DNA from: Amphiscolops sp. MND2022
Lineage: Eukaryota
Reading direction: 5' to 3'
NCBI GenBank assembly: GCA_964187785.1
Contig: OZ076421.1
Span: 11,718,001-11,782,000 of the forward strand
DNA: 64,000 nucleotides
Below the pieces are notes generated by a model, which was given only the letters and a program-made list of their open reading frames with translations, did not search any database and had not been told where the DNA came from. A program made the position numbers and the translations under genes. Shown in pieces: positions 4,404 to 25,612 of this stretch (positions within the stretch are counted from its first letter, which is position 1; each line of letters starts with the position of its first letter).

Positions 4404-4597
4404 TTTTGTAATCCCTTTAGTTTAGGCATACCGAACTGAATCAAGTACCCAAAAACAGTAAAAAATCAATAGATTGAAAAATTGGACTCACTGGTTATCT
4501 GGTTTAATCTGCCTGGTTCTCCGTTTTTAGATGGAGAACCTAAGCCTAATTGTTGTGATAAACTTATTAAATAGTTTCCGGTTATACGAAAACTTGA

Positions 4598-5449
4598 TGA
4601 TGGTTCTCACAAGAAGTGCACTGGTCTCCTCTTCCAACAGTGATGGGACAACTCAACTGGGTGGAACATGTGCTGTGGATCATGGACTCTGTTCTGTATG
4701 TCATGGATCGCAACAAACGAGGGACTGGATTCAATGTGAAAAATGTTCTCACTGGCTTCACTCTCAGTGTCTGAAAATACCAAAGGAAGTATTCGTTTAC
4801 TTATCCTCGTCTGAAAATTTCTCCTATTTTTGTGATTCGTGTGTTAGCAAAAAATCAGCCTTTGATGACTCAACTGAAAATGCTAAACTAGATGAACTTA
4901 AAAAAGATATCAAAACAATCGTCGAAAACGTCATTGAAGAAAAGTTGCCGAACAAAATTCCTATATCTACGAAAGAACCTAAAACACGAGATCGGCATGT
5001 ACCTGAAACGACCATAACTGAGGACAATAATTATCATTACAAAATCAGAATATCCGGAATTGAGGAAATGTATTCCAAGTTTTTCATAGATAGACAACTG
5101 CATGATAAGTCCGAAGTCGAAAAGGTTCTTGATGATTTAAATTGCTCCGGAAATGTTATTGAATCTCAACGACTTGGGAAATTTGATACAAATAGAACTC
5201 GGAACCTACTTGTAACATTTGGATCTGTATGGGATGCTCGCAAAGTCATCGCAAAGGCCATCGAGAAAAAATATTTCCTAAACAAAAGGGTTTTGATCAC
5301 CCCTGAACTGTCCCCAAAGGACCTTTTACTGGAAAGACAACTGTTAGCCAAACGTTACGAATTGATCAGGAGTGGCATAGATCGTGGCCGTTTGAAAATA
5401 AAAAAAATTGAGACTCTACAAAGACAACGAACTGGTAGAGGTGAACTGA
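4598..5449 (+). CDS. LINE ORF1 with PHD finger; +1 frameshift in the A-run at ~5399-5407
   Basis: CSVC...WIQCEKCSHWLHSQC...YFCDSC is a PHD finger. Removing one A gives LKIKKLRLYKDNELVEVN-stop (TGA 5447-5449), matching the C-terminus of the neighbouring LINE ORF1. Confidence 0.85.
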
Positions 5450-5459
5450 CTAGAAAATT

Positions 5460-8285
5460 ACGAAAATGTCCACCGCATCTTTCTTTTAAACTGCCGCAGT
5501 ATCTTATCCCTAGAAAAAAGACTTCACTTATCGTGTATTCTCCAATCAAGATTACCTGATATTCTCTGCCTTACTGAAACCTGGTGGGATGAATCTTCTT
5601 CAGACAATGCTTTTCTCACAGCTGCCTACTCAGTCATAGCAAAAGCCGTGCGTGAAACAAATCAGCATGGAGGTGTGGCTATTATGGCAAAAAAAGAACT
5701 GGTTGCATCAAAAATAGAATGCTTGGACAATACATTTTGTTGTGTTATATCAATTGATACCTATGGAATTATTGTTTTATACAATCCTCCAAACCCTAGT
5801 GAGTATCGTGTTCCTGATGATGTAATCTCAAATTGCTTAATTGCTTATCCTCGGCCTATAATTTTCTCAGTAACGCTTCCATTGATAAAGTATTAATTAT
5901 GGGCGATTTCAACTTACCAAACGAGGATTGGGCACAGTTCCCAGCGATCAGTACAGAATATTTCTGTGAAACCGAAAAATTCCTTACTGCTAAAAATTTC
6001 ACCCAGCTTGTAAAGGAACCAACCCACAAAGATGGTAATGTCCTTGACCTGGTATTTACAAACTATGACGAGCCTGAAGTTCTTGATATTGAAAAACATC
6101 CAATTTTTTCTGATCATTTCAGCATATCTGTGGGTATCCCTAAAAACTCTGAAACAATGTACACACAAACTGACCTCAAACAATACAGTCTCGCAGCAAC
6201 CGACTTAAATTCGATTGACCTAACACTAGCTCAGTCACTATTCTCGTTCGAACTAGACCAAAATTCTGTCGACTTCATTGCGGACTGGCTGATTTCATTT
6301 CAAAACATTCTCAAACAGTTCTTAGTTAGCAAACGGCAAAAGCGAAAAATGTTGCCGGATTACTTGAGCTCTCACAGTATTCATCTCTTCAACTGCCTCC
6401 AAACAGAATTAAAGCAACTAAATGGCCTCAACTTGAAAAATTATATGAAATACAATACTATCTGTAAAGAACTTGAAAATTCTATTGAGTTGGACACAAA
6501 TGTATTCCTCGACAAGTTTTGTGCCGTAAATAGTGATGTAAATGATTGTTACAAACTGATTAGAAAACTCAAAAGTTCCGACATTCCGAAGACAATGATT
6601 GATCCCAAAAAGAAAAAAATTACTGGAAGTTCCAAAATTGGAAACGCCTTCAATCAGTATTTTGGATCAGTATTCAATGCTTCTGACGATACATTCACCG
6701 ATTTTACTGATATTGTACTGAATGATGTAGAACTATCTACCGAAATCGCAAAAGAGGCTATAGATTTATCAACTGATGGCATTGGCCCTGATGGTATTCA
6801 TGGTCAAATTTTACGAAAGTGTTCAAACAGTCTCTCAATACATTTCTACAACCTATCAAAGGTTATCGTAGAAACTGGAGTGTATCCTACATCCTGGAAA
6901 AAAACCATTATCACACCCATATTCAAAGAGGGATTGAAAAATGAGATAGCCAACTACCGTCCAATTGCTTCTTTGAGCAAACTTTCACTCGCATTTGAAA
7001 GAATTCTTTTCAGGAGCATTTCCAAGCATCTACAGGACAAACTATCCTCCCATCAATTTGGTTTTCGAAAATCCCGATCATGTATCATCCATTTACTGTC
7101 GTTCTTTGATAAAATCTTTGAGTGGATCGATTCCAAAGAAAAAGCCTTTGCAATCTATTTGGATTATTCTAAAGCATTTGATCGAGTCCCTCATTCTATA
7201 CTACTGAAAAAACTACGATCTCTGGGTCTGGGTGGATCTCTACTCAAACTAATAGCTTCATATTTGCAAAACCGAGTGCAACAAGTTAAAATTGAAAACT
7301 GTCAATCAGAAGAGTGTCCTATTGCAAGTGGTGTGCCCCAAGGCTCAGTGGTCGCCCCGCTTTTCTTCATTGCGTATATAAATGACCTGCCCGAGAATTG
7401 TGAGTGTGTTCCATTTCTATTCGCTGACGACCTTAAACTGGCAAGTTCATCTCTGTTCGAGCTTCAGAACGATTTGTTATCACTAATGAAGTGGAGTGAA
7501 GAAAACAAACTCGACTTTAACTTGCAGAAGACGAAATTATTACACTTCAGTAAATCAAAGATGCAATGTGATAACCCTGTCCTACACATGGGAGAAAATG
7601 ATATCTATCCTACAACAAAGAGTATTCGTGATCTTGGTGTCTGGGTCTCTCCAAATTTGACATGGACCAATCACATAAATATTAAAATAGCAAATTGTTA
7701 TAAACGCCTAGCCATGTTACGTCGGAACCTTCCTAAAATGCTTAACCCTGACATGAAATTTAAATTGTACCGCATCTACATTTTACCCGCACTTGCTTAT
7801 GCTTCAAGTGTTTGGCATCCGAACAGAGGAGACTTTAAAAAATACAAAGGCTGCAGCGGATCTGTTTCAAGTGGATTGACTATAGGAGCTCATTTCATCA
7901 ACTTCTTGACAAATATCACCATTTACCGATCTCTTTACATCTTCAAATGCAGGATCTGCTACTGTTCAACAAGCTCACAATGGGCCTTTATGACTTCACC
8001 ATATGGGATTATGTGTGTTCAAATCAACACAACAATAATTATGAGCTCAGAAGTAACACCAAAAATATTTTCATGTCTGACTACACACGTTTAAAGTGTA
8101 CACGGGAATTTTTCTTCAATCGAATCATCAAACTTAGCAATTTTGTACAACAAGAATACAACATTAAACTGCCAAACCACCCTGCCGCATTTGAATCCGA
8201 TCTAAAGAGAATTTACTGGAATCACTACAAAACTAAATATGAAGATAGTGGCTGTAAAATGTTCCTGAAGTGTAGCTGTTGTTAA
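5460..8285 (+). pseudogene. LINE ORF2 (AP endonuclease + reverse transcriptase) with two frameshifts
   Basis: LLNCRSI, ILCLTETW, HGGVAI, MGDFN, SDHF, YRPIASL, QFGFR, LDYSKAFDRV, GVPQGS, YINDLP, FADD; ends CSCC. Frameshifts at an 8-bp duplication (aattgctt x2, ~5830-5845) and an A-run (~7837-7843). No in-frame stops once these are corrected. Confidence 0.92.
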
Positions 8286-8329: not shown

Positions 8330-9200
8330 NNNNNNNNNNNNNNNNNNNNNNNNNNNNNNNNNNNNNNNNNNNNNNNNNNNNNNNNNNNNNNNNNNNNNNN
8401 NNNNNNNNNNNNNNNNNNNNNNNNNNNNNNNNNNNNNNNNNNNNNNNNNNNNNNNNNNNNNNNNNNNNNNNNNNNNNNNNNNNNNNNNNNNNNNNNNNNN
8501 NNNNNNNNNNNNNNNNNNNNNNNNNNNNNNNNNNNNNNNNNNNNNNNNNNNNNNNNNNNNNNNNNNNNNNNNNNNNNNNNNNNNNNNNNNNNNNNNNNNN
8601 NNNNNNNNNNNNNNNNNNNNNNNNNNNNNNNNNNNNNNNNNNNNNNNNNNNNNNNNNNNNNNNNNNNNNNNNNNNNNNNNNNNNNNNNNNNNNNNNNNNN
8701 NNNNNNNNNNNNNNNNNNNNNNNNNNNNNNNNNNNNNNNNNNNNNNNNNNNNNNNNNNNNNNNNNNNNNNNNNNNNNNNNNNNNNNNNNNNNNNNNNNNN
8801 NNNNNNNNNNNNNNNNNNNNNNNNNNNNNNNNNNNNNNNNNNNNNNNNNNNNNNNNNNNNNNNNNNNNNNNNNNNNNNNNNNNNNNNNNNNNNNNNNNNN
8901 NNNNNNNNNNNNNNNNNNNNNNNNNNNNNNNNNNNNNNNNNNNNNNNNNNNNNNNNNNNNNNNNNNNNNNNNNNNNNNNNNNNNNNNNNNNNNNNNNNNN
9001 NNNNNNNNNNNNNNNNNNNNNNNNNNNNNNNNNNNNNNNNNNNNNNNNNNNNNNNNNNNNNNNNNNNNNNNNNNNNNNNNNNNNNNNNNNNNNNNNNNNN
9101 NNNNNNNNNNNNNNNNNNNNNNNNNNNNNNNNNNNNNNNNNNNNNNNNNNNNNNNNNNNNNNNNNNNNNNNNNNNNNNNNNNNNNNNNNNNNNNNNNNNN
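8330..9200. other. Assembly gap (N run)
   Basis: Continuous N bases. Confidence 1.
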
Positions 9201-9218
9201 GAAAAGAGAGGAGTGAGA

Positions 9219-9430
9219 CCCCTTTTTCAGACCATGGCCAAAACACTTTTATTACCTAAATCCGACTACCTTTTTCAGACCACATCTGCTAGGACCCTTT
9301 TCCAGACCATATCTTCCTTGATTCAGACTAACATTTAGAGTGTGGAAAAGGTATTTCCCCTTTTTCAGACCAGCTGTTTTACTCTCAGGCTGACCATAAG
9401 AGTGAGAAAAAGGTGCTTCCCTTTTTCAGA
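9219..9430 (+). repeat. Cluster of CCTTTTTCAGACCA-like motifs (possible subterminal repeats of a DNA element)
   Basis: About five variants of (c)tttttcagac(ca) within ~210 bp next to the gap. The 16-mer cctttttcagaccatg recurs at ~22584-22599. Confidence 0.55.
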
Positions 9431-10367
9431 ACAAATATGAGTTGAATTCTTTTGTTGAATTATGAAATAAAAATGGTAATTATACGCTAGTAATTGTTCT
9501 AAGTGTTGGCAATGCTTGTTTGTTACACTACGCTGTCTGTATGGAAGGAAAAAAATGGCATTTAACATTTTCAATTTTGAGCTTCAATCTACTACTGTAA
9601 TTATATCAAATTATATCAATGCTAAATTATATCAAATAGGAAAATTCAAATTCACTGTTTCTGAAACAAGGACGTTCCGAAATTCAAGGCAATTTTTTGA
9701 AATATCATCAACAATTTACAATATTTGGGCATCAATCAATCATTCAACAGTGAGTGGCAATTAATTTCATAAAAACGGTAGGGTAGCAAACTTTTCAAAC
9801 CAGCAGAGAAAATCTTCGAAGCTGAAGTTGAAAAATATAGCAAAGCAAAGTCACGATAGAATCAATTTCTTAAAGGGACTGTTGCATCAGGGAGCAATAT
9901 TCTATGGATAAAATGATTTACTTATTCGTGTAAAAATTTAGAAGCAAATTTCGATATCGAATTAGGAAAATAACTAGTGACAAAGTGATTGAAACTCCAA
10001 AAGTTTCTTCAGTGGAAATAATATCATCTACAAAATTTGGGATCTTCTTCCTCCCGCCCCTGGTAGAAATTTTCTGCTATTGTCATCAGGAACCATAATT
10101 ATTTCAATAAATTTCAATTGATGTCATAATTTTTGACCGACTGTTGGAAAAACAAATTTAAAGGTGGGGTGAAGAAGATCCAACTTTTGCAACCCTAATT
10201 GGAAGCACTGATTTAGTACTACTCAATTTTGTCCCCAAAAGGAAAATCCATTGGCCAGACGAATGCAAAATAATCAAATAAAACTAGACATTCAAGAGAT
10301 TCAGCAGCAAAACAAAATACAAGAAACATAGCAATGACTTATGTTATACAAGAAACATAGCAATGAG

Positions 10368-11737
10368 TTATAACTTCCGAGTGAACTTCCGCTTCCTCTT
10401 CCCTCGGAATCCAGACTTATATCCCTTCCTTTTCAGTCCACCTTCTTGTTGCCCGGTGGGAACAAGCCAATCCCTCTCCTGTGTCCTGCAAGTGGCAGGT
10501 GTGTCGATCATGATATATGATGACAGAAGGTTGGAACCACAATCAGCCACAGAAATGACCGCATGAACTACCCGCGCCGGGAGGTAAACGGTGTCGCCCA
10601 CGTTCTGGTGAATTATCCAATATTCTTCAATATTGTTCTTCACTTTGGCGATGAATTCGTGAAGGGTCCAATTTCGCCTGATTCTGAACCTTGCTTCCTT
10701 CTGGTTGCCTTTGAAAATGAACCAGTATTTTTCTCCTCGTAATAGCGTCGCTATTACAGGGTAACCTGGCGCAGGATCTTCATCAATGTGAAAGGATCGG
10801 AAACCTGAAACAAATACTTCTCAGAAGAACTGCATATAAAAATTGGCTATCTAGAGCTCGTTTTTCAAAATACCATAAGCTCTGAGCCCTTTTAATCGGA
10901 ATTAAATTTCTACTGATCGTTAATGATATTGCTATTTTCAATACTTTGCATTATAGTTTTATTTTCAATAAATTCAAAACTTAGGGGGTGGGATACTAAA
11001 TAAGAACAAATTATTGCATAAGACAATTAACATGTATCTTGCTGATTGTTAATGTTGCTAATTATAATCCCCTAAACCTCCGCTAAAAATTATGACAAAA
11101 TTCAATTGTCAAAATTTTTAAAAATAAAAACTTAGGGGCGGACAGACCTTCGAAACAGCCAGAGACTTTTTTTATAAAAACGTCAGTAGCGGCTTTTGGA
11201 GCAATAATTAATAATAACAACAATGTAATAACCTTTCTCAGAAATGCAAAGTAGGTTCAAATCAACAACTTCATCCGGTTGTAGCGGGGGTAAAATATTG
11301 AAGAAGGCAGGATCAGCGGATAGATTGCCTTCACTATCCAAGGGGTACACGGCTTCTGTTATTATGCTACCTTGGAACACTGGATCATTTCGGGTGACCG
11401 CCTCACTCTGTAACTCTGGACCAAGGCTCTCAATTGTTGAAGCGTCTTCTCCTTTCCTCTGTAACCTGGCGTCTTTGTAGCCAACAAGTGGTTCTCTCAC
11501 TACAGCAGGTTGAGTTTCAGTGTGGGGATCTAGATCTTCTGTTGTAAAAACCTGTCCAAAACAAACGGCAGGATTGTAATTTAGCCACTGAATAAATTCA
11601 GCCACTAATTCATTAGGGGTTTTCCGGCTAGCACCACTTCTAGTCGAGTCTCTGGTGATTTTTGGAGAAAATTCACTGTCCGAAGGTGAAGAAGAATCAC
11701 CATTTGCGCTGAATGTTTTAGCACTGGTGGCGTTCAT
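10368..11737 (-). CDS. Two-exon JmjC-domain protein (Fe(II)/2-oxoglutarate dioxygenase, putative lysine demethylase), 313 aa
   Basis: Exons 11737-11233 and 10804-10368 joined by a phase-1 GT-AG intron (11232-10805). The join reads LNLLCISEK-G-FRSFHIDED...LLRGEKYWFIF...IHQNVGDTVYLPARVVHAVIS, giving the HxD, GxKxW and distal His JmjC motifs. The start codon is inferred. Confidence 0.82.
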
Positions 11738-11868
11738 TGAGAGTCTGAAAAAAGTCAATGTTGATAAAGACGCGTATTTGCTTTTTATTCAATGCCTAAA
11801 AATAAATATTATATTTGTAATAATAAACAAAATTATTTTAAAATAACGCAAAATGTATTACATATACA

Positions 11869-12136
11869 CAGTGAGTTCCGGATATAATTGATCCGGATAT
11901 AATAGAAGTCTGGGTATTAAAAAGTAATTCCCTGTTCCCGATAATCATAGTACTGAATAGTTCAGCTAGCTTATAATAGGGATCCGGAATCCACTTTACT
12001 TATTCCAGTCTGTTGCAACTGGATTCTGGCAGTCAAACAAATCAAAACCAGCCAAAAATGGAAAAAGTTGATGCGTCTGTAAGGCTCTTGACCTTTGCTC
12101 TGGTCCCATGGCATTCACTATTGCCGGAACTCACTA
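11869..12136. mobile_element. MITE with short TIRs (Tc1/mariner-pogo-like)
   Basis: agtgagttccgg at 11870-11881 and its reverse complement ccggaactcact at 12124-12135; non-coding interior. Confidence 0.65.
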
Positions 12137-12591
12137 TAATAATAAACATGAAAAAGACATAATTTTGAGTGATAAAATCTTGTGCGTTTACTCAGTTATA
12201 CGAGAAGCGCGGAAGATTGTAAAACGTGTGAATTTTTTTAAAACACATATTATTTCTTGAATGCATATAACGTGTCATGACATATTTTGTTGATCGATTA
12301 TGGCCGTGACTTGGTTACTTTCACGCCGTCATACGAAAAGCACGCTAGTTCTACGAATATAAAACACTTGACCCCCTTGCGCAGCTAAGTAATACAGAAT
12401 CAAAACTTTTCTTCTCGGTAACTTTATTCAGAGAACATATACGTAATGATTGGAGAATAAATACAGCCAAAAAGTAATACAAAATCAACAAAACAAATTA
12501 CAACGGAGTTGCAAACAGGGAATTCAATTCTGCCTATACGTTCAGAAACTACTTTAATCGAATATTAAATATATAAAAAAAGTCAATATTC

Positions 12592-13070
12592 GTGATGTTG
12601 TCCTCCCTCTGAGGGAACTCATTCCTCAGGAGTCGAACAACCATCACGTTAATCAAATATTCCTTAAAAATACCTAATCTTGATGTTGCCCTCCCCCTGA
12701 GGGAACTAATTCCTCAGGAGTTGAACAACCACCACTTAAATCAAATAATAACAAAATGTAATTATTCGTGATGTTGGCCTCCCTCTGAGGGAACTCATTC
12801 CTCAGGAGTCGAACAACCATCACGTTAATCAAATATTAAATAGAAATTATTCGGTATGTTGCCCTCCCCCTGAGGGAACTAATTCCTCAGGAGTTGAACA
12901 ACCACCACTTAAATCAAATATTAAAAAGAAATTATTCGGTATGTTGGCCTCCCCCTGAGGGAACTCATTCCTCAGGAGTTGAACAACAACCCCTTAAATC
13001 AAATATTCATAGAAATTTATTCGTGATGTGTGCCTCCCGCCAAGGGATCTGATTCCTTGGAAGTTGACCT
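12592..13070. repeat. Array of six ~86-bp repeats, each with an imperfect hairpin
   Basis: Units start at ~12592, 12682, 12768, 12855, 12940 and 13023. Core ctgagggaact(c/a)attcctcag; unit 6 has ccaagggatctgattccttgg. Units 1/3 and 2/4 alternate as subtypes. Confidence 0.95.
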
Positions 13071-13133
13071 ACCTCAAAAACGAGTGTCGAATTGAATACC
13101 CTGGACATAAACATCAAAAAATTCTTTTTTAGT

Positions 13134-16100
13134 TCACCATGAACTTGGATATCCTGCGTTCTTCCATTCATAAATGGTTTTTAGAACAAACTGCACAGTT
13201 CCGTACTTCATTAACTGATTTTTGTTAACTTCTTTTGTTAACTGGGCAATGGTCTTTTTTCCCAATCCCTTTTCGCGCCTCACGAACTCAGTCGCTATCA
13301 CAGCGTACGTTTCTTTTTTGAATTCCTGGCGCTGTGGGCGACTTCTCAAAAAAGTACAAACTGCACTCTCGGTGGGAATACCATCTTTTATGCCCAATGA
13401 GCTCCCCAGGGGGAGGTTAACTTTCAAGGGCGCCTTTTTTTTCTTCTTTGCCGGAGGTTTCTTATAATCTTCACCACTTGAGTAATCCGAACAGGAGTCA
13501 TTCTCGGAGCTGATCTGGTTCTCTTCGTCAGAACTCTCACTTAAATCATCATCTTCATTGATCTCTTCTGCTTGAGCAGCTACAATTTTAATTTGATCCT
13601 CGGTTTCCTCTGAGACGTTGATGATTCGATCTACAGCATTTGAAGTTTCGCATGCGTCCATTTCTTTTTGGATCATCTCATAATGTTTTTGCGCCACATT
13701 CCTAGAATGACCGATATGCCGGTCGAGGGAGCGCTCAATTTGTACATCTTCGAGTTTTTGGGCAAAAATGGTGCACATTGATTTTCTCCAAGCGTTTGTA
13801 TTAATCGGAACCTCGAGATTGAGGTGTCGCTCCAAATATTTAGACCATTTCCCCATGATGTTTCTTTTCACAGGATCATTCCCACTTTGATCAAGTTGTT
13901 GAAATAGATAACTCTGATGAGCTGCATTCAAAAGTTTTTTTATCCGGAAGAACCGGACGAAAGTGAAAAGTTCGTTCTCAGAAAGAATAATTCGTCTGAC
14001 TCCCTCACTCTTGAAATTTTTGTTGGTATTGCGCAGTTCGTTTGTCATTTCGTCGATGATAGTTCTGATGCCAGCGTTTTCTTTCAGTCTGCTTTTCAAC
14101 ATTTTCTCATTGATGAGTTTAATGACGTACAAATTCTGTTTGACATGCTTGACATTGGCGAAAAATTCTTTTCTGATGTACAAAGCGCTCGAAATTCGAC
14201 ATACATTTCGTGCACAGATTACAAAGATCAGACAAAACTGTAGATGTCTGTATTCACGTTCTTTATTCGAGTACGTCTCTGTCTCAAAACGATCGAGAAG
14301 TTCATACAAATAATTGACAACAGCTTGATAAACACCAATAATTTGCTCTTGACTAGCGACTTGAGTTGAACTAATTTCTTTGGCAGTTGCCTTTCGGAAC
14401 GGGAGCTCAGAGTTGACATGCTGTTGGTATCGATTCAGACCACGCTCTATCTGGTCACACAATTGAGCAAAGGTATTCATTGCTGAAGGCTCAGAGAGAC
14501 GACAAAATGTGACGAAGTCTTTTAATTCACGACATAATTGACTCCTTGTTTGGCCAGCCTTCACTTTCTGTTCAGTTTTCAATTTGGAAAAATAAACGCT
14601 GATAGTATGGGCACTAGTAAATCCCTCCGTTACAACAATGAACAGTTTAATCTTTTTAACAAGGTTGGACAATCTCTCCATGGCATATCGTCGTGCACCT
14701 TTACCCTCGTCGAAGTCGACTTGCTTTTCTTTACACCAAGCATCGATCTTTTCCATGAAATTAAAGTTTTTGCTGAATTTCTTGACTTCCCTTTCCAGTT
14801 CACTCAATTCAGAATTATCTGTTTCGCCTGGGGTGAGAAAACTCTCGGGGAGATCTTTAACTTTGGCTACATTTCTTATATATGCTTTATGCTCAGGGAA
14901 AGGGTGTTTGTCTTTGCGATGGAAAACTCGGTTACAGTTATCTTTAGTACAGATGTACATGCTTTTTTTCGTCTTCTTGTTTTTGGTCTCAAAATAGTGG
15001 AGTTTAACGACTGCATTCAAATGTTGACCTTCGGAATAATTGTGGGCGCGCTTCAAATGTTTAGGGAGACACATATGTGTTTTCAGTTCCAGCTTACAAA
15101 AGTGGCACATAACCATGTAAGGAGCTTTGCGAGGATCTGGTTTGTCGACTCTATCTTGTGAACTCTGTGACGCTTCAAGAGTTCGGATTGCAGATCGAAT
15201 GGCTCCGTAATCAAAGGCAACACTTTGATAATTGCCACTTCTCTGTCCCATTTCTAGGTGTGGCTTCTCGTAGTGCGCATTTTTGAGATGCATCCGAATG
15301 TCCTTTGGGTTGCTGCCCAGAATTATTGTTTTGCATCTGAAACACGACAGTACTTTTGAGTCATTGAATTGAAAAGCGCTACTGTTTGATTATCAAGTGA
15401 GATATTGTGATTCCGGTTTCGAAAACAACAAAGAAATATTCAGGTCCTGACATATTTATTTAACTTATAGAAGTCTATAGTAGGTGAAATCATTCACCAA
15501 CAACCAATAAAGCAATCACTTGCTCCATAAATCATTTCTTATTTTCTTAGACATGCAAGCATACGATTTGTTGCCGATATAGTTAGATAGATAAGATTAA
15601 TTCTCTTTGACAAACAAACACAACATAGTGCCAAGCAGGAATGATATGTGAAGAAATTACAGGTTCATTAGCCCTTAACGTTGAAAGTATAGTAAAAAGA
15701 ATATAACACACCTGAGGCAAATGGTTGCATTGATATCCTTCTTATCCAGTATTTCAAATCGTCGGCAGCATTGCTGGCCGAGATAGTGGTTAATTACACC
15801 TGACTCTTCGGAAAACTGCTTCTCACAATAGTAGCAGCTGTACCGCTCTTCTTTTCTGTCTTCTTTTTCATCATATAATTCATCAGAGATTTCGCGATCA
15901 AATTGCCCTTCATCATTGCTTCGGTTTTCGTAGTTCATTTCTACGTCGAAAGTTTCCACTGAAACTGATACTTCTCTTTTCCAGGTATCTTCTTTACTAA
16001 CTTCACAATCACACAAGATTCGGAACTCGTTTCCATCTGGTTTTGTGCTCAGGTCACTTTGAATTTTTTTTGATGCAGACTCGAAAGTATACGTCTGTAT

Positions 16101-16808
16101 ACATACTGATCGCTTGCCATAGGAATTATTTTCGCTCGCTATCACACTGCCAACGTTGAAACAACCCGAAAAACTCGTCGTACTTGAACTCGGATCACCG
16201 ATTTGAGAAAATTTTGAATTCAAATCTACAGCACGGACTTGAGTCATGACATTCCTTTGAAACTGTTTTCTGGAACTGAAAGTTGTGTCGTTTCCCCCAA
16301 GCTGAACGTCCCAATAATAACTGTCTAGGTTGCATTGAATATCTTTCTCTGCAACATTTACTACTTTTTTTGAGCGCCAAGGAAACGATGCACTATCTCC
16401 GTACCCACAAAGGTAATCATACCGAATTTCTTGGCCTCTCTCGATATCACGCTTGGCTTTCAAACCAATGTATTTCACGCCGGAAATGAGAACTTCATAA
16501 GGACGGGCGTTGGGATTTTCATGATCGTCATTGATGTACCTAGCTAGTCCTGAATTAACGTCGAATGCATCAATGTACTCACTGGAACTAGGTATAACAA
16601 AAACGTAATCGTTTTCTTGCGTGGGAACCCCTTGAAAGCGTTTTCCCCTGTAAAAAAGTAGAAAATCGCCTCCCTTGAAGTCCTTGTCTGCAAAAAGACC
16701 AAATCCGACAGAGTTGCTGATGTGCTTCACGACAAAGCTGTCTTCTGGATCTTTTGCAATGAAGTCTTCAGGTCGTATTGATTTTCTCGTGGAGGATCTG
16801 CGTGTCAT
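13134..16808 (-). CDS. Two-exon SET domain + C2H2 zinc fingers + tyrosine recombinase fusion protein, 1099 aa
   Basis: Exons 16808-15712 and 15336-13134 joined by a phase-2 GT-AG intron (15711-15337) that completes a C2H2 finger (CLR|CKTIILGSNPKDIRMHLKNAH). SET motifs: GFGLFA, FLLFYRG, LARYINDDH..PNA, EIRYDY, FPWR. Recombinase motifs: VCRISS, KNFK, NAWRK, IGHS..VAQKHY. Confidence 0.88.
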
Positions 16809-17204
16809 GCTTCACTGAAAAATATGCAGAAATCAAGTTCCTGAAAATTTGATGTAAGTCAGAAAAAGGGAAGTAATGGTCGGAAAACGGTGAGTAGGAG
16901 AGTAATTAGTATATTTAGTATTTAATCAGTATTCCAAACTAGATTAACGACGTATTTGAAACAAAAACGTATTGTAATGGGTTATCACTAGGGCCGGTAA
17001 AAAGTCACGGAAAATTGTGGCAAAATCACGCGGAAAAATCACGAAAAATTACGAGTATTAAACATATATAATTACACTCCACTCAATCAAGACCAAGATA
17101 TTTAATTGAATGCAAGGAAGGTGAATAAAAAATGATATTGATTGTTATATTTGATTTGTCAGCAATCGTAGTCACATTTCTGTTTCATCTATATACAAAA
17201 TCAA

Positions 17205-20200
17205 AAAAAGGCTCAGCACCAACAACAGAAAAATTTCCAACAGAATGGTGGAAGTGGCGGTGATTACCAGGATTACTACCAAGAGTCCTACCAAGATGTG
17301 TCACCACATATGTCGGCACCAGGTAGTTATAGGGGTGGCGGTTCTTTCTATGGTAGACGAACTTTTATTCGTGGCTCCGGGAGAAGACAACATATGTTAC
17401 ATACAACACAATGAACCTTTTTCTTCTGAAAGTGCAATCGCAGATGATGGTGCTCCTGCAAGCAATCATTACAACCGAGCTCCCGTGTCTTTTCCTCATC
17501 AGAAGTTTTCACACAGAGGCGCTGCGAATTCTAGTTGTCGACCGAGAGGCGCTATGGGACGGGGTAAACCCACAGATATGGATTCCAACAACAACACCGC
17601 TTTTTCTCCTTCCATGAGATCGCGACTTGGTCCCAAGTACTCTCCCAAGCAACAATCTTTAACTGAAACTACTTCCATTATTTCTGATGTTCCGAAACCG
17701 TGCGGAACTTATACAAAGAAGGAAAAGAAGTCGGACGTCTTTTGGATCAGCGATTTGAGATTCGTTGAATTTAAGCCGATTTCAAAGCCAAATGTATAAA
17801 GGTGGAGTCTTCCAAAAATATAACGTTACGAGTAACAAGCGGCCAAACGAAAGAACAACCTACAGACCTCGATTCAATGTTGCAGAGCGTCGGCTCGTCT
17901 CTGAAAAACATCTCGGATCCAGAACCGGGGAGACTTTGTGTGGCCAGAATCCATATAGCGTAACTTTCATAACGTACCTTTAGTGTACTTTTAATTCCAA
18001 TAAGTGTATTTCTTTTCATATCTATTGAATTGCCGAGAGACGCGTTCGAAGAAATGATCATGGAAAAAAGTTCTCCAATACCTTTTTCAGTCATCAACGT
18101 CTTGGCTTGCAATAATTTCTTTTCGCTGACAATCCATTTTGAAACAAACAGTTCTCTTGTGTGCAAAATGCTTTGCCGCTAGATCCTTCATAATGTTGAT
18201 TCCCTGTCATGATATGGGCAATTCTGGTTTGCAATCCGAAATGTTTCAGGCTTTCGCAATGAGTGGCGGTGATTACCAGGATTACTACCAAGAGTCCTAC
18301 CAAGATGTGTCACCACATATGTCGGCACCAGGTAGTTATAGGGGTGGCGGTTCTTTCTATGGTAGACGAACTTTTATTCGTGCCTCGGGAGAAGACAACA
18401 TATATTACATACAACACAATGAACCTTTTTCTTCTGAAAGTGCATTCGCAGATGATGGTGCTCCTGCAAGCAATCATTACAACCGAGCTCCCGTGTCTTT
18501 TCCTCATCAGAAGTTTTCACACAGAGGCGCTGCGAATTCTAGTTGTCGACCGAGAGGCGCTATGGGACGGGGTAAACCCACAGATATGGATTCCAACAAC
18601 AACACCGCTTTTTCTCCTTCCATGAGATCGCGACTTGGTCCCAAGTACTCTCCCAAGCAACAATCTTTAACTGAAACTACTTCCATTATTTCTGATGTTC
18701 CGAAACCGTGCGGAACTTATACAAAGAAGGAAAAGAAGTCGGACGTCTTTTGGATCAGCGATTTGAGATTCGTTGAATTTAAGCCGATTTCAAAGCCAAA
18801 TGTATAAAGGTGGAGTCTTCCAAAAATATAACGTTACGAGTAACAAGCGGCCAAACGAAAGAACAACCTACAGACCTCGATTCAATGTTGCAGAGCGTCG
18901 GCTCGTCTCTGAAAAACATCTCGGATCCAGAACCGGGGAGACTTTGTGTGGCCAGAATCCATATAGCGTAACTTTCATAACGTACCTTTAGTGTACTTTT
19001 AATTCCAATAATTGTATTTCTTTTCATATCTATTGAATTGCCGAGAGACGCGTTCGAAGAAATGATCATGGAAAAAAGTTCTCCAATACCTTTTTCAGTC
19101 ATCAACGTCTTGGCTTGCAATAATTTCTTTTCGCTGACAATCCATTTTGAAACAAACAGTTCTCTTGTGTGCAAAATGCCTTGCCGCTAGATCCTTCATA
19201 AAGTTGATTCCCTGTCATGATATGGGCAATTCTGGTTTGCAATCCGAAATGTTTCAGGCTTTCGCAATGAGTGGCGGTGATTACCAGGATTACTACCAAG
19301 AGTCCTACCAAGATGTGTCACCACATATGTCGGCACCAGGTAGTTATAGGGGTGGCGGTTCTTTCTATGGTAGACGAACTTTTATTCGTGCCTCGGGAGA
19401 AGACAACATATATTACATACAACACAATGAACCTTTTTCTTCTGAAAGTGCATTCGCAGATGATGGTGCTCCTGCAAGCAATCATTACAACCGAGCTCCC
19501 GTGTCTTTTCCTCATCAGAAGTTTTCACACAGAGGCGCTGCGAATTCTAGTTGTCGACCGAGAGGTGCTATGGGACGGGGTAAACCCACAGATATGGATT
19601 CCAACAACAACACCGCTTTTCCTCCTTCCATGAGATCGCGACTTGGTCCCAAGTACTCTCCCAAGCAACAATCTTTAACTGAAACTACTTCCATTATTTC
19701 TGATGTTCCGAAACCGTGCGGAACTTATACAAAGAAGGAAAAGAAGTCGGACGTCTTTTGGATCAGCGATTTGAGATTCGTTGAATTTAAGCCGATTTCA
19801 AAGCCAAATGTATAAAGGTGGAGTCTTCCAAAAATATAACGTTACGAGTAACAAGCGGCCAAACGAAAGAACAACCTACAGACCTCGATTCAATGTTGCA
19901 GAGCGTCGGCTCGTCTCTGAAAAACATCTCGGATCCAGAACCGGGGAGACTTTGTGTGGCCAGAATCGAGTTGGACCAGATTTTTCCAATTTGCGGTCTA
20001 TTGAGAAACAGGACTTCGATTACAGTAATTTCGAATTGGACAAACTTCTTTTACAGCATATTGAAAAAAGTACATATCATATCTTTCTTCTCAGCTAGAG
20101 CGCGTACTTAATATTTGGAAGTTTTCAGATGATTGTTGAAAATGCTCTATGGATGCGGGGCTCCGCGGTTTGACTTGCTCCTTGAAGTTCTCACCAAAAC

Positions 20201-20815
20201 TGGTTAGTGCAGAATACGTTTTATTTCTCTCTCTCTCTCTCTTGCTCTCAATATTTCAAATGTGTTTTTCTCTTATATACTGTCATATCTGTTTGAATTC
20301 TTCCCTTCATTCACTTATCAGTAGTAATCAATAAAAAATGACATCGGTTAGCGCCATTAGACTTTAGGATAAGTTTTAAAGTTTACAGTTCAATAAAGGA
20401 ATGTGGGGTCGTTAAATGATTGAGGGGTGATTAGGAGATTAAGAGACTAATTTACACACGCTATCTCACTTGGACTTTGTTTTTAGCATTCCGATCGTGA
20501 CATGGAATGTTACAGTACAACTGAGGAAGAATTTGCCAAATTTATTCATGAGAATTGTAGTGTTGACGCCGTGTTCACCAATTTCATTCATCGAGAAGGT
20601 ATCGATTGGTGGTATTGTTTCCAAAAGTTTAGCTCAACCGAAGATGCCAAAATTGCTCTGGAGTTTTTGAAAGCCAGAGATTTCAAGGGAAAAAGAATCA
20701 GAGCCATGTATGCTCGCAAGAAAGAAACAATGCCTTCTTAACAAAAGGCTCAGCACCAACAACAGAAAAGTTTCCAGAATGGTGGAAGTGGCGGTGATTA
20801 CCAGGATTACTACCA
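17205..20815 (+). pseudogene. Rearranged fragments of an RRM-containing RNA-binding gene (possible Tudor-like segment)
   Basis: 20486-20741 gives WNV.YSTTEEEF...WYCFQKFSSTEDAKIALEFLKARDFKGKRIRAMYARKK (RRM with a frameshift). It continues into QKAQHQQQK..QNGGSGGDYQDYYQ, which is duplicated at 17205-17281. EPGRLCVARIELD near 19940 resembles a Tudor start. Confidence 0.55.
17253..19967 (+). repeat. Tandem amplification A-B-A-B-A, period 1008-1009 bp
   Basis: A is ~698 bp (17253-17951, 18262-18959, 19270-19967) and B is ~310 bp. The copies differ by only a few substitutions and one 1-bp indel, and the ORF track repeats every 1008 bp. Confidence 0.97.
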
Positions 20816-21059
20816 AAATTACTACTACTACTACTGCAGAAGCTTTTTGGGAGGAACTTCATTGGCCTACAGAAACGACTAAGAGCACAACAACTGAGTG
20901 ATGATGGCGTACATTACTTACCGGAAGGCTATAAACGGATCAGGAACGCAATAATTAAATTTCTTGCGAGTCGAAGAGTAATTCCACAATACAATTAATG
21001 AACATCGTTCCACAGCATCTTTTAACTGCTTGTTGTCAATTATTATGCTGTTATTTCTA

Positions 21060-21922
21060 AGAAGTAGTGGACAGCTCTGAGCGGATATTTGTTGAAAAGT
21101 GTCCTGTGGATGTTTTGGAGAAGTTGATGGCGTCTGACAATTTACAGGTCCAATATAAAACTCAGGTTTATAGACTGATGATGAAATGGGGTGAAAATGA
21201 TGTTCAGAATCGGACAACGAAAGATTGTCTAACTGAGCTGTTCAAATTCATACGTATAGGCTGTTTGCCCAACCAGTTTTTGATGGATGTAGTCACGGAT
21301 AATAAACTCATGTTGTCCCAAAAAGTTGCATTTCGCCCACAAAAAGTGCCATTCGGTTCCATCTGGGATATCATGGTGGAAGTAGCAGTGAGAGCGGTAC
21401 AGATTGTTCTGGATGCGGAATTGGAAGATTCCAAAAAAAGGGATTAAGAAAAGTGGTTTGGAACCCTATCATCTGATACCACGAAACTCATTTCATGCCT
21501 TTGTTGTTTTCAGTAATGATGATAATTTCGAGCGTTTTCCGACGTAGACCAACAAATGGCAACTTTTGCAAATCAAAATTTTGTTGGACGGATTTAGTCT
21601 GCTTTATCTTGATGGCAAAACATATCTTTTCCTTGTAGTTAGATCAGATGACGACTATGAAGCGAAACAAGAAATGTACGACCCAATCTCGTCAAAGTGG
21701 GAATCTTTGAAGCCCATGCCGACTTGTCGTGTTTGGTTCGCTTTGTGTTTGATGGATTCCAGATATGTATACACGTTTGGAGGATACAACGCTGATGGTT
21801 TGTATGTAAATACAGTTGAAATGTTGGAATACACGTTTGAGCAAAAGAAGTGGTCTGATTTCTGGACGATGCAGCCAGTGAAATGCACCAGTGAAATCTA
21901 CCAGTTGCAGGGGTTGAATTGA
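21060..21922 (+). pseudogene. BACK + Kelch-repeat (KLHL-like) gene fragment
   Basis: DVLEKLMASDNLQV...VYRLMMKW...LFKFIRIGCL (BACK). EMYDPISSKWESLKPMPTCR and YVYTFGGYN...NTVE (Kelch). No BTB domain; frames are broken. Confidence 0.8.
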
Positions 21923-22026
21923 ATTAATACGTCAATCAATGACAATTTTTATCTGAAAGACAACAGACATGATAGGTATAACCTTCTTATTTACCACGTC
22001 TTATTCCGTTCCCTCGATTTACGAAA

Positions 22027-22568
22027 GGACCGCAACTAAGGTCTAAGGAATAAAATCTAAAGAAATTTCGTCACTAAGATCTAAAGAACTAAGATCTAAA
22101 AAGCATGCACCGTAACTAAGGTCTAAATTGAAATAGAATAACGTCTAAGGAAACATGTGGTGTCATGTACGATGTATGCACGTTCGCCCTCACCGTCGCA
22201 AAGACCAGCTCCCACTACGATCGCTTCGCAATCTCCGTTCCCGCTAGGCCTTTGCTCCTGTTCGACCTCGCTTAACAAGATGGGAACATAGGCGGCCCCA
22301 AGGGGCCGCGGGGCACTAGAGGAGTTGGGGACATATCCAAGTCACGTTTTATGCATCAAGTCATTTCCAAATTGGGAATATCATCCGAAAACGGGAATAA
22401 TGTCTGAAAAAACCGGAATAACATCAGAAAATTTAGACTTTAGTTACAATTCAGGATCTGGCATTCTCTAGATCTTAGTTACGAAAAATGACATTTAGAT
22501 CTTAGTTCTTTAGATCTTGATTACAGAAGTGCGTTTCGATCTTATTCCTTAGATCGTAGTTTGTGCCC
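22027..22568 (+). mobile_element. Foldback/MULE-like MITE with CTAAGATCTA subrepeats (copy 1)
   Basis: Imperfect long TIRs built from ctaagatcta units; an inverted copy lies at 25833-26285. Confidence 0.8.
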
Positions 22569-24416
22569 ACCTTTTCGTGAACACCTTTTTCAGACCATGA
22601 CTGCCAATTCGAAATTTTCATATATAAAAAAAACATGAAAATGAAAATATATATCTCAAATTATGTATCTGCGCAGATTCAAAGAGTCCCTCAAAAACAG
22701 CCCCAGACATTGGCAAACAGCTAACATCCTGAAAACTTATAGATCAACTCTGGAAACCGATAAAACTCTTCTGCATCACTTTGATATATGTTTTTACTTT
22801 GTAATCCTAACGACTCCATTTTATACTTTTTCAAATATCAATTTGTAAATCATGGCCAGCAATTAATGGCTTCTTCGATCAAATTGTATTTTTTATTGGC
22901 TTAGAGAAATATATTAATATATAACCGATAAAATGTCTATTTTGGAAGCGAAAGCATTTGTAAGAACAATATGAATTTATGATGATCTGTTGATTTTTTT
23001 TATCTGAAAGTATGTATGATCCAATCAAAATAATCGAACTCAGCGATACATCCTATTACCTCATATTCAACCAAGAGGAGCTCCGGTTGTAGTTTGAAGA
23101 CATTTTCCGGCGTTATTTGCGGCACACAACTTAGTGCGGTGTAAATGTAAAAGGCATGAAACATTGTAAGTCCAAACTGCCTGCATGAGATACTTCCAAA
23201 GTGTGGCTGTTCACCATTTGACCGTATATTAAAAAAATTGATAACCATAAAAGAATTGGAAGATGTAGAGCACCGAATTTGAAATTCAGTAAGTTGATTA
23301 TGACAGGAAGAAAACATTGCAGCGCAAACTTATCTACGATTTCGAACTTAGCAGATTATTGATTATTCTGCTGAAAGATGCTGTTTACCACTGATTCAGC
23401 TTACTATTGTGCCACTGCCGCTAGCAATTATTACGGTTCACGCAGACACCGATATTGTTTTGATCTCACACAAATGTATAACGAAATTTATATCGAAATG
23501 TATGTCAAATACATAACAAAAAATTTATATAAATATATCCCTGGTTTTCATTCCAAAGTCATTAATTGTTGTTTTAAACTGTATCCGGTTTTTGATTCAC
23601 TTTTCTTTTTCTGAAGTACGCCTCATGAGACTACTTTCTGCAGTGAGAACAAAGTTTGTTAACGTTGACTGCTTGTTTTGTAGGTGAATTAGGATAGACC
23701 ATTGTCTTTGAAGGAGATCTATATCGACATTCAGTAGTACGTGAAGAAGGAAAAATTATTGAAAAAGCTTTCTTTTCATAGCTCTGCACATGTTTTCAAG
23801 CGAGGATACGAAATATACTTGATAACAAAGGTTTTGTCAAAAACGCTTTTTTCGTCTTCCAGCTGGATCGTAAACTCACCTGTTTCGAACCAAGGATTAT
23901 GGACGAAGTAATCAGTATTCTACTCATGGCGACACTTCAACAAACCCATTTGGGTATGCAGTCCCTATCGAACGGAGAGTTACTGTGTGCAATACGAGAG
24001 CTGTAACTTCTTCCTACTGAGAGATATGGTTATCACATTTTTGGTGGTTTTGGCCAACTTTTGAATGTCTACTCGTAGAAAAATTTAAGTCTTCATGGTG
24101 AACTGTTAAATCGGTTCTGAAGTTAGTTCATAGTATGAACGTTCATCTCTGCTCAAGATCTTGCAATTAGGCCGTGGAAATTGGTTGTTTTTGGATTTTT
24201 AGAGGATGGCCTGGCATTTAACCAGAAGCTTTCACCACATGAGGTTACTTCAGTGTTTCATTATCGTAGGAGTTGGTGAAAGAAGATAGCGATGGCAAGT
24301 ACCTATCTTATCAACTGCAACTGGATATTGTTCATTCACAAAAGGCCCGAAAGTCCTAATTGTTGACTAAAAAAAATGCGGCTCCTTTTAGTTCATTTCC
24401 GCAAGTGCTTACCTTT

Positions 24417-24793
24417 NNNNNNNNNNNNNNNNNNNNNNNNNNNNNNNNNNNNNNNNNNNNNNNNNNNNNNNNNNNNNNNNNNNNNNNNNNNNNNNNNNNN
24501 NNNNNNNNNNNNNNNNNNNNNNNNNNNNNNNNNNNNNNNNNNNNNNNNNNNNNNNNNNNNNNNNNNNNNNNNNNNNNNNNNNNNNNNNNNNNNNNNNNNN
24601 NNNNNNNNNNNNNNNNNNNNNNNNNNNNNNNNNNNNNNNNNNNNNNNNNNNNNNNNNNNNNNNNNNNNNNNNNNNNNNNNNNNNNNNNNNNNNNNNNNNN
24701 NNNNNNNNNNNNNNNNNNNNNNNNNNNNNNNNNNNNNNNNNNNNNNNNNNNNNNNNNNNNNNNNNNNNNNNNNNNNNNNNNNNNNNNNNNNNN
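24417..24793. other. Assembly gap (N run)
   Basis: Continuous N bases. Confidence 1.
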
Positions 24794-25612
24794 TAGTAAG
24801 TAGTAGTAAGTAGTAGTAAGTAGTAGTAAGTAGTAGTAAGTAGTAGTAAGTAGTAGTAAGTAGTAGTAAGTAGTAGTAAGTAGTAGTAAGTAGTAGTAAG
24901 TAGTAGTAAGTAGTAGTAAGTAGTAGTAAGTAGTAGTAAGTAGTAGTAAGTAGTAGTAAGTAGTAGTAAGTAGTAGTAAGTAGTAGTAAGTAGTAGTAAG
25001 TAGTAGTAAGTAGTAGTAAGTAGTAGTAAGTAGTAGTAAGTAGTAGTAAGTAGTAGTAAGTAGTAGTAAGTAGTAGTAAGTAGTAGTAAGTAGTAGTAAG
25101 TAGTAGTAAGTAGTAGTAAGTAGTAGTAAGTAGTAGTAAGTAGTAGTAAGTAGTAGTAAGTAGTAGTAAGTAGTAGTAAGTAGTAGTAAGTAGTAGTAAG
25201 TAGTAGTAAGTAGTAGTAAGTAGTAGTAAGTAGTAGTAAGTAGTAGTAAGTAGTAGTAAGTAGTAGTAAGTAGTAGTAAGTAGTAGTAAGTAGTAGTAAG
25301 TAGTAGTAAGTAGTAGTAAGTAGTAGTAAGTAGTAGTAAGTAGTAGTAAGTAGTAGTAAGTAGTAGTAAGTAGTAGTAAGTAGTAGTAAGTAGTAGTAAG
25401 TAGTAGTAAGTAGTAGTAAGTAGTAGTAAGTAGTAGTAAGTAGTAGTAAGTAGTAGTAAGTAGTAGTAAGTAGTAGTAAGTAGTAGTAAGTAGTAGTAAG
25501 TAGTAGTAAGTAGTAGTAAGTAGTAGTAAGTAGTAGTAAGTAGTAGTAAGTAGTAGTAAGTAGTAGTAAGTAGTAGTAAGTAGTAGTAAGTAGTAGTAGT
25601 AGTAGTAGTAGT
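24794..25612. repeat. Perfect 10-bp satellite (TAGTAGTAAG)n, ~80 copies, grading into (TAG)n
   Basis: Uninterrupted 10-mers to 25590, then pure (TAG)n to 25612; the left end is lost in the gap. Confidence 0.99.

Follow-up and report, generated by a model that had tools for sequence, protein, structure and literature searches.

A probable two-exon JmjC gene apparently carried by a multi-copy Crypton-like element of Amphiscolops sp. MND2022

The locus described here lies in a 64,000-nucleotide (nt) stretch of genomic DNA from Amphiscolops sp. MND2022 (contig OZ076421.1 of assembly GCA_964187785.1, positions 11,718,001 to 11,782,000), which is referred to as the window and whose own numbering is used below. 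Between 11737 and 10368 its minus strand holds a candidate two-exon gene for a small protein of the JmjC superfamily, which appears to travel within a Crypton-like mobile element together with a SET domain frame and a putative tyrosine recombinase. The parts of the gene, with the residues predicted to bind metal and cosubstrate, are as follows.

11233 to 11737, minus strand: exon 1, codons 1-168 and the first base of Gly169
10805 to 11232, minus strand: predicted intron of 428 nt, phase 1, GT..AG
10368 to 10804, minus strand: exon 2, Gly169 to Leu313 and the TAA stop, encoding the catalytic part of the JmjC core
10790-10788 (His174) and 10784-10782 (Asp176), minus strand: HxD motif (FHID), predicted Fe(II) ligands, kept in all three paralog classes and aligned to the FHID of PHF2
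10730-10728, minus strand: Lys194 in GEKYW, predicted 2-oxoglutarate-binding lysine, present as GxKxW in every intact member examined and aligned to the GEK of PHF2
10565-10563, minus strand: His249 in VVHAV (QNVGDTVYLP...HAV), predicted third Fe(II) ligand, 75 residues after His174 and conserved in the family
10433-10371, minus strand: basic C-terminal tail KRKGYK...KRKRKFTRKL, resembling a nuclear localisation signal and predicted to be disordered, with a predicted local distance difference test score (pLDDT) below 50

Read directly on the minus strand, the gene opens with ATG at 11737-11735 and closes with TAA at 10370-10368. Exon 1 ends in ..GAGAAAG at 11233 and is followed by GT at 11232-11231 (donor AAG/GTTATT); the acceptor AG stands at 10806-10805 within TTGTTTCAG, immediately before the G at 10804 that begins exon 2. 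The split codon G/GT yields Gly169, and the spliced frame of 942 nt encodes 313 amino acids (aa) with a single terminal stop. An earlier reading of the sequence, referred to here as the original prediction, had proposed splicing from 11233 to 10804, and these coordinates proved exact, as did its remark that a list of open reading frames (ORFs) displays only a 91-aa piece (10368-10643) and a 191-aa piece (11183-11758). Of the residues encoded by exon 1, about the first 90 are rich in Ser and show little conservation, and ~95-168 make up the N-terminal portion of the JmjC core. A DNA contig of independent origin (X1) matches 10001-12358 without any difference, intron included. An acceptor-like site, TTTTTTCAG, is found at about 11752-11744, just 5′ of the ATG. 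Just past the stop, at 10329-10363, a duplicated motif, CATTGCTATGTTTCTTGTAT, shows small deletions in two further contigs (X2 and X3), which represent 3′ untranslated variation between copies or individuals.

The locus is not a hidden single host gene, a point that the original prediction missed; it belongs to a large multi-copy family associated with mobile elements. A search of the 1.07-Gb genome with the homolog P0006 gave 388 candidates and at least 141 related JmjC loci, many of them with intact frames of about 270-300 aa. Exon 2 recurs with 100% identity at C8, with 99% identity on the unplaced contig C1120 and, in a broken state, with 98% identity at C12, besides dozens of paralogs. 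The gene is intact in the window and C8 copies, which are identical; the C1120 copy has a 2-bp deletion in exon 1, and the C12 copy is frameshifted and partly deleted. A tree of 20 members resolves three clades and places the window gene with the class-2 paralogs, a C3 copy and P0002, a homolog from another organism (support 99/97). Searching 1.84 billion protein representatives returned 11 short unnamed matches to the family, and a word-indexed protein search (5.8 billion) returned one short relative, a near absence that probably arises because gene callers miss or mask family members.

Assignment to the JmjC superfamily follows from both single-sequence and profile searches. Exon 2 matches the Pfam JmjC family (PF02373) with 25.4 bits and an E-value of 2.1e-5, the cutoff being 24, and its JmjC_2 score falls slightly under the JmjC_2 cutoff; nine of 15 family members match Pfam JmjC at E up to 0.1. 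Exon 1 alone retrieved zero Pfam families at E up to 10 and no usable match in the ESM Atlas. A family profile made from an alignment of the 15 members (A1) matched PHF2 (E 4.1e-5), PHF8 (5e-4) and KDM7A (7.5e-4) significantly, and ceKDM7A (1.5e-3) and JMJD6 (0.04) more weakly. The profile alignment to PHF2, PHF8 and KDM7A begins about 50 residues before the HxD motif, within the part encoded by exon 1. As judged by this profile, the catalytic core is nearest to the KDM7/PHF8/PHF2 branch, with JMJD6 a hundredfold weaker.

The motifs named in the original prediction (HxD, GEKYW and QNVGDTVYLP...HAV) are all present, with the triad in order, and the basic tail that it likened to a nuclear localisation signal is present and kept in paralogs. 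The window protein, the class-2 paralogs and the homolog P0003 have in common both the KRKRKFTR motif and the position of the stop. One decayed family copy has Gln in place of the second His (His249). The gene stands beyond chance because exon 2 alone reaches Pfam JmjC, because each exon finds in-frame homologs at other genomic loci as well as in public sequences, and because the join matches the contiguous sequence of homologs with no residue gained or lost. The two-exon gene is thus very probably real and its product a JmjC superfamily protein.

The splice at 11233/10804 is itself proposed from comparative evidence. In the class-2 paralogs (loci L010-L020, 44-50% identical), spliced residues 96-224 align in one frame across the intron site, and the intron that these genes do possess lies further downstream, near spliced residue 224. 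The public homologs P0004 and P0002 run through this site without a break, and the spliced ..LLCISEK-G-FRSFHID.. is exactly as long as their ..LLAISGRRLRGFHVD.. At the C10 locus, three older decayed tandem copies (65-72% identical) contain an intron at the same position as the window gene; exon similarity halts exactly at the donor and resumes at the acceptor, and the introns are unalignable and differ in length. The donor of the dead C10 copies is mutated from GT to GA. Origin of the intron as a transposon insertion was considered and excluded, given that a genome search confines the 428-nt sequence to four copies of the repeated block described below and that its position is common to the older C10 copies.

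Comparison with a C10 copy gave ratios of nonsynonymous to synonymous substitution (dN/dS) of 0.17 over residues 85-168 and 0.11 over the first 55 codons of exon 2, and of 0.78 over residues 8-92 of the Ser-rich N-terminal part. The values of 0.11-0.17 between subfamilies indicate that the gene was functional while the lineage spread.

Structure prediction points in the same direction as the sequence profile. The AlphaFold (AF2) model of exon 2 has a mean pLDDT of 67.8, with blocks over residues 11-90 averaging 71-92, and its Foldseek list is dominated by JMJD5, TYW5, JMJD6, ceKDM7A, FIH, PHF8, PHF2 and JHDM1A, with probabilities up to 0.97. In a shape search of the ESM Atlas with this model, the eight best sets were JmjC, Cupin_8 or JmjC_2 (TM 0.39-0.48 over 75-96 residues), and the Atlas language-model features of exon 2 fall in JmjC or cupin clusters only (0.86-0.88), which serves as a lead only. 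The closest contiguous homolog, P0002, was modelled with a pLDDT of 56.6; in an unbiased search of this model against 48,161 chains, cupin-fold proteins made up most of the top 50 rows, with Z up to 9.3. A two-chain prediction joining the C-terminal part of exon 1 to exon 2 scored 0.24 against a mark of 0.34 and is neutral. For the P0002 model and the window exon-2 model alike, a double-stranded beta-helix (cupin) fold is supported by these predictions. The fold comparison that the original prediction had suggested thus retrieved JmjC and cupin structures, and the non-cupin fold which it had named as the refuting case did not arise.

The surroundings of the JmjC gene are those of a mobile element, the further parts of which are listed here.

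15675 to 16808, minus strand: 377-aa SET domain ORF (Pfam SET, E 1e-10), upstream of the recombinase ORF
13134 to 15293, minus strand: 719-aa ORF, putative Crypton-like tyrosine recombinase, upstream of the JmjC gene and in the same orientation
12587 to 13057, no strand assigned: 5.5 copies of an 85-bp unit in tandem, separating the recombinase stop from the JmjC gene
9201 to 9307, minus strand: 3′-terminal conserved segment of the element, entering the masked stretch 8330-9200

On one strand, then, the order is SET ORF, putative recombinase, 85-bp repeats, JmjC gene and terminal segment, and the whole lies in a repeated block of at least 15 kb (window 9201-24416). This block has three occurrences and one rearranged copy: C8 matches it with 99.9% identity over 8.7 kb, C1120 with 95-98%, and C12 in part. 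Across the genome the 719-aa ORF finds 66 matches, among them seven intact copies that are 60-61% identical to it; fused SET and recombinase frames of about 1,100 aa occur among these matches, and the linkage of SET to recombinase recurs in every subfamily found. Its Atlas features fall in clusters of hypothetical cnidarian and chordate proteins (0.96) and of DUF3435 (0.90), with lower values for ALOG/Phage_integrase and SET clusters, all of which are leads only. The ORF is likely a tyrosine recombinase, an assignment best kept as putative. The 85-bp repeat region, possibly regulatory, varies in copy number, with contigs from DNA runs skipping 163 or 336 nt (joints 12746/12919 to 13083).

Comparison with sister elements bears most directly on the status of the JmjC gene as cargo. 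In each of the nine sister-family copies, the 107-nt segment 9201-9307 has a counterpart that matches it at 79-80% and points the same way. The distance from this segment to the recombinase stop is 1250-1362 nt (about 1300) in the nine sister elements and 3827 nt in the window, the extra ~2.5 kb of the window element being the JmjC gene with its flanks. The JmjC search gave no match beside the nine sister copies. The difference in spacing (1.3 versus 3.8 kb), combined with the lack of a JmjC match at the sisters, argues that this subfamily acquired the JmjC gene inside the element. At C10, an independent locus, SET fragments and decayed JmjC genes of the window gene's subfamily alternate. The JmjC gene is accordingly most probably the cargo of a multi-copy Crypton-like element, situated between recombinase and terminal segment.

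It could instead belong to the host, as a member of a lineage-specific JmjC family that happened to lie beside a mobile element and was co-copied with it by segmental duplication. The low number of block copies, three to four, fits such an origin, as do the BACK/Kelch fragments that the block also holds and that are limited to its copies. Against it, the gene is enclosed by the recombinase gene on one side and, on the other, by a terminal segment common to nine sister elements; SET fragments adjoin decayed members of its subfamily at the independent C10 locus; and related JmjC genes lie in other dispersed repeats. With these on the other side, a host gene is very improbable.

Taken as a package, a real JmjC gene that is element cargo and probably catalytic is, on balance, a probable reading of the locus. 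Several observations weigh against it. At the junction, the donor GTTATT is weak, differing from the common donor consensus at +3 and +5, and this is the main caveat at the level of sequence; in addition, the public runs containing the stretch, four from one study, all consist of DNA contigs that include the intron and show no joint at it, and are neutral on splicing. Between the window and C1120, exons diverge by 0.9-2.6% and intron and flanks by 1.8-2.1%, with no signal of selection, so that individual copies appear to decay neutrally, as mobile-element copies do. Exon 2 passes the Pfam JmjC cutoff by a margin of merely 1.4 bits, and as a single sequence it found PHF8 and KDM7 in the PDB only at E ~1.3. 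A Foldseek search of the exon-2 model against the PDB gave nothing at E 0.001 or better (best E 0.03), and a VIA structure search with the same model, with Z of at most 5.1, placed unrelated small beta proteins of non-cupin fold topmost. The 719-aa ORF is unrecognised by Pfam and PDB searches, and similarity between block copies enters masked stretches at both ends (8330-9200 and 24417-24793). Two further points concern the catalytic core itself: the residue three positions ahead of His174 is Arg, where PHF2 and the class-3 paralogs have Thr, and the helical JHD domain after the JmjC core is absent, the Pfam scan giving no PF17811 match.

The weak donor and the confinement of public runs to DNA both speak for a silent passenger, that is, a newly copied frame whose junction is unused in the window copy and whose intactness reflects a young duplication. 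The 99.9% identity of the window and C8, too recent for decay, agrees with this, and so do the frameshifts, stops, deletions or GT-to-GA donor of the C1120, C12 and C10 copies. The dN/dS of 0.11-0.17 between subfamilies speaks against a silent gene, however, and the catalytic residues, stop position and tail are conserved, with two copies fully intact. A silent passenger is, in view of this, rather improbable.

The closest structural counterparts of the proposed element-borne enzyme are PHF2, PHF8 and KDM7A (PDB 3ptr, 3k3n and 3kv9). All share the motif order FHID, GEK and a second ligand in an ...IP....HAV-like strand, at similar spacing and with 75 residues between the two His. The window protein differs from them in that identity is only 13-18% in fold-search alignments, in its lack of a PHD finger and of the post-core helical domain, in its size (313 aa, with a core of ~170 aa), in the Arg that replaces Thr three positions before the first His, and in being encoded by a multi-copy mobile element. 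Beyond His249 only 64 residues follow, which are basic and predicted to be disordered (pLDDT <50). Pfam and Atlas searches with the exons detected no PHD, CXXC or F-box/LRR reader or targeting domains. The protein is a minimal KDM7-type core, and by architecture it is not a KDM2/KDM7 member. The KDM2/KDM7-type pattern of the original prediction hence holds for the core (profile E 4e-5 to 7.5e-4) but not for the architecture (no PHD, CXXC or F-box, and no JHD); its description of a compact protein without a PHD/CXXC reader agrees with the 313 aa and with the lack of any reader domain in Pfam and Atlas.

A protein with this gene structure and fold could still be something other than a histone demethylase, either a JMJD6/FIH/TYW5-type hydroxylase of proteins or nucleic acids or a non-catalytic chromatin binder that uses the cupin scaffold. 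Fold searches rank JMJD6, JMJD5, TYW5 and FIH beside KDM7, the family profile also matches JMJD6 (E 0.04), the minimal core is without the substrate-binding helical domain of KDM2/KDM7, and Arg takes the place of the usual Thr three positions before the first His. A hydroxylase is opposed by the lysine demethylases PHF2, PHF8 and KDM7A being the best and the only significant sequence matches, and a non-catalytic role by the purifying selection on the metal and cosubstrate ligands. Either form of this alternative is considered unlikely. Fe(II)/2-oxoglutarate oxygenase activity of the window protein, as suggested by its conserved residues, is given a marginally better than even chance.

Relatives of the window gene occupy several kinds of mobile context. 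Related JmjC-only genes occur in the Crypton-like SET-recombinase element, beside a Gypsy-type pol, and in a dispersed unit of 2.2 kb. The Gypsy association is seen in a public contig, where the P0006 gene is convergent to a pol with RVT_1, RNase H and rve domains. Many JmjC-like ORFs of ~293 aa form same-strand pairs about 7 kb apart, as expected if both long terminal repeats of a retroelement contained the gene (for example C3:25072196/25079256, C2:45186316/45193208, C1:66517273/66524477 and C2:81755346/81762421). The three-exon class-2 gene (L013-L020) belongs to a ~2.2-kb unit found on at least seven chromosomes with 96-98% identity; the unit stops sharply on one side (..GCAAACGTTCTGACA) and on the other runs into two alternative flanks. 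Three class-2 copies stand in tandem at C5:4421133-4425671, with a period of ~2026 bp. Class-3 genes sit within repeats of more than 3.8 kb. For the class-3 ORFs L033 (C4:73665390-73669199), L037 (C1:34807086-34810886) and L042 (C2:38408522-38412328), the repeat flanks are 90-96% identical between sub-classes, and the central cassette of ~1.3-1.4 kb with the ORF is too diverged for blastn, with a proportion of synonymous differences (pS) of ~0.81, which is saturated, and of nonsynonymous differences (pN) of 0.20-0.24. The contrast suggests that old class-3 cassettes have been exchanged within backbones that are themselves near-identical.

Methylated lysines on histones are the main means by which hosts keep mobile elements silent, and elements are known to carry readers of such marks and, rarely, writers. 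Against this background, a way of working can be outlined for the window gene. The gene would be transcribed and its 428-nt phase-1 intron removed, and the conserved basic tail would bring the protein into the nucleus or onto chromatin. His174, Asp176 and His249 are predicted to bind Fe(II) and Lys194 to bind 2-oxoglutarate, a chemistry suggested by the residues present and their conservation. The enzyme would then oxidise methyl-lysine; because its core is nearest to PHF2, PHF8 and KDM7A, repressive marks would be the likeliest substrates, namely H3K9me1/2, H3K27me2 or H4K20me1. Demethylation could loosen or tune the silencing of the element, possibly jointly with the element's own SET writer. 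That the protein is a histone demethylase serving the element in this manner is put forward tentatively.

Since a JmjC enzyme is apparently carried as cargo and a SET domain is linked to the recombinase, the element may edit the very chromatin marks by which hosts silence such elements. A broader and more doubtful reading is that the JmjC gene is an eraser module swapped among the mobile elements of this animal, stripping repressive histone methylation from their own chromatin. If this were so, the anciently diverged JmjC cassettes in near-identical backbones would be the record of an arms race with host silencing. An element-encoded KDM7-type eraser beside the element's SET writer would amount to a direct counter-measure or a self-targeting device. 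The main interest of the locus lies in a wider pattern across the genome, of which it is one example: several unrelated classes of element hold the same small eraser-type enzyme. At 313 aa, the compact enzyme is also well suited to expression and assay.

Comparable pairings of epigenetic enzymes and genomic parasites exist elsewhere. TET/JBP dioxygenases are reportedly associated with KDZ transposons in basidiomycete fungi (Iyer et al. 2014). These are likewise 2-oxoglutarate/Fe(II) dioxygenases with an epigenetic substrate that expand alongside a DNA transposon family, but they oxidise DNA bases and are not JmjC proteins, and both the transposon class and the host kingdom differ. Closer in domain content are the JmjC-only, KDM4-like genes of the endogenised giant viruses of Amoebidium (PMC11244446). 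Like the window gene, these encode a stand-alone JmjC domain in a genomic parasite, are reader-less and present in many copies, keep introns and have been proposed to act on host chromatin; in contrast, they resemble KDM4 and lie within giant-virus insertions of a protist, and the window gene is KDM7-like and sits in a recombinase-type transposon of an animal-like genome. A survey of chromatin domains captured by transposable elements describes Chromo, PHD, SNF2 and SET domains fused to transposon proteins (bioRxiv 10.1101/2021.11.30.470311), and the word JmjC appears nowhere in its text. The surveyed cases are readers, remodellers and SET writers in the form of fusions, whereas the window element encodes an eraser-type enzyme as a separate gene. 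A functional analogy for the proposed anti-silencing role, with no sequence relationship claimed, is offered by Epe1 of fission yeast, a JmjC protein that counters H3K9-methyl heterochromatin (PMC6576747); Epe1 is a large, HP1-recruited product of a host gene, unlike the small element-borne protein of the window.

The capture of Chromo, PHD, SNF2 and SET domains by transposons is thus established, and JmjC-only genes are already known in giant viruses. A literature search turned up no report of animal transposons that carry JmjC genes. Element-borne JmjC genes may be under-reported in animal genomes, since gene callers probably miss or mask the family.

The remainder of the block and its borders contain further repeats. 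At 17253-19967 lies a tandem repeat of ~1008 bp with ORFs of 184-222 aa lacking any Pfam match, of which the window contains ~2.3 kb more than the C8 copy of the block. BACK and Kelch ORF fragments at 21067-21922, inside the block, occur at the DNA level only in the three block copies, and this part is either captured host DNA or a co-duplicated flank. A repeat of ~274 nt at 22027-22300, with 94-95% identity to very many genome sites (1375 first-look candidates), is probably a short interspersed nuclear element or a miniature inverted-repeat transposable element inserted in the block. A satellite, TAGTAAGTAG, with 82 copies at 99% identity, occupies 24794-25612 and begins right after the masked stretch 24417-24793, where block similarity stops. 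On the plus strand at 4531-8285 lies a non-LTR (long terminal repeat) retrotransposon, with a 342-aa first ORF and a 753-aa endonuclease/reverse-transcriptase-like ORF, which reaches the masked stretch at 8330. Elsewhere in the genome, more than 60 near-identical loci (for example C2:98765541, C3:93742656 and C351:64591) hold a 168-aa frame that is 41% identical to residues 1-98 of the SET ORF and constitutes another dispersed repeat.

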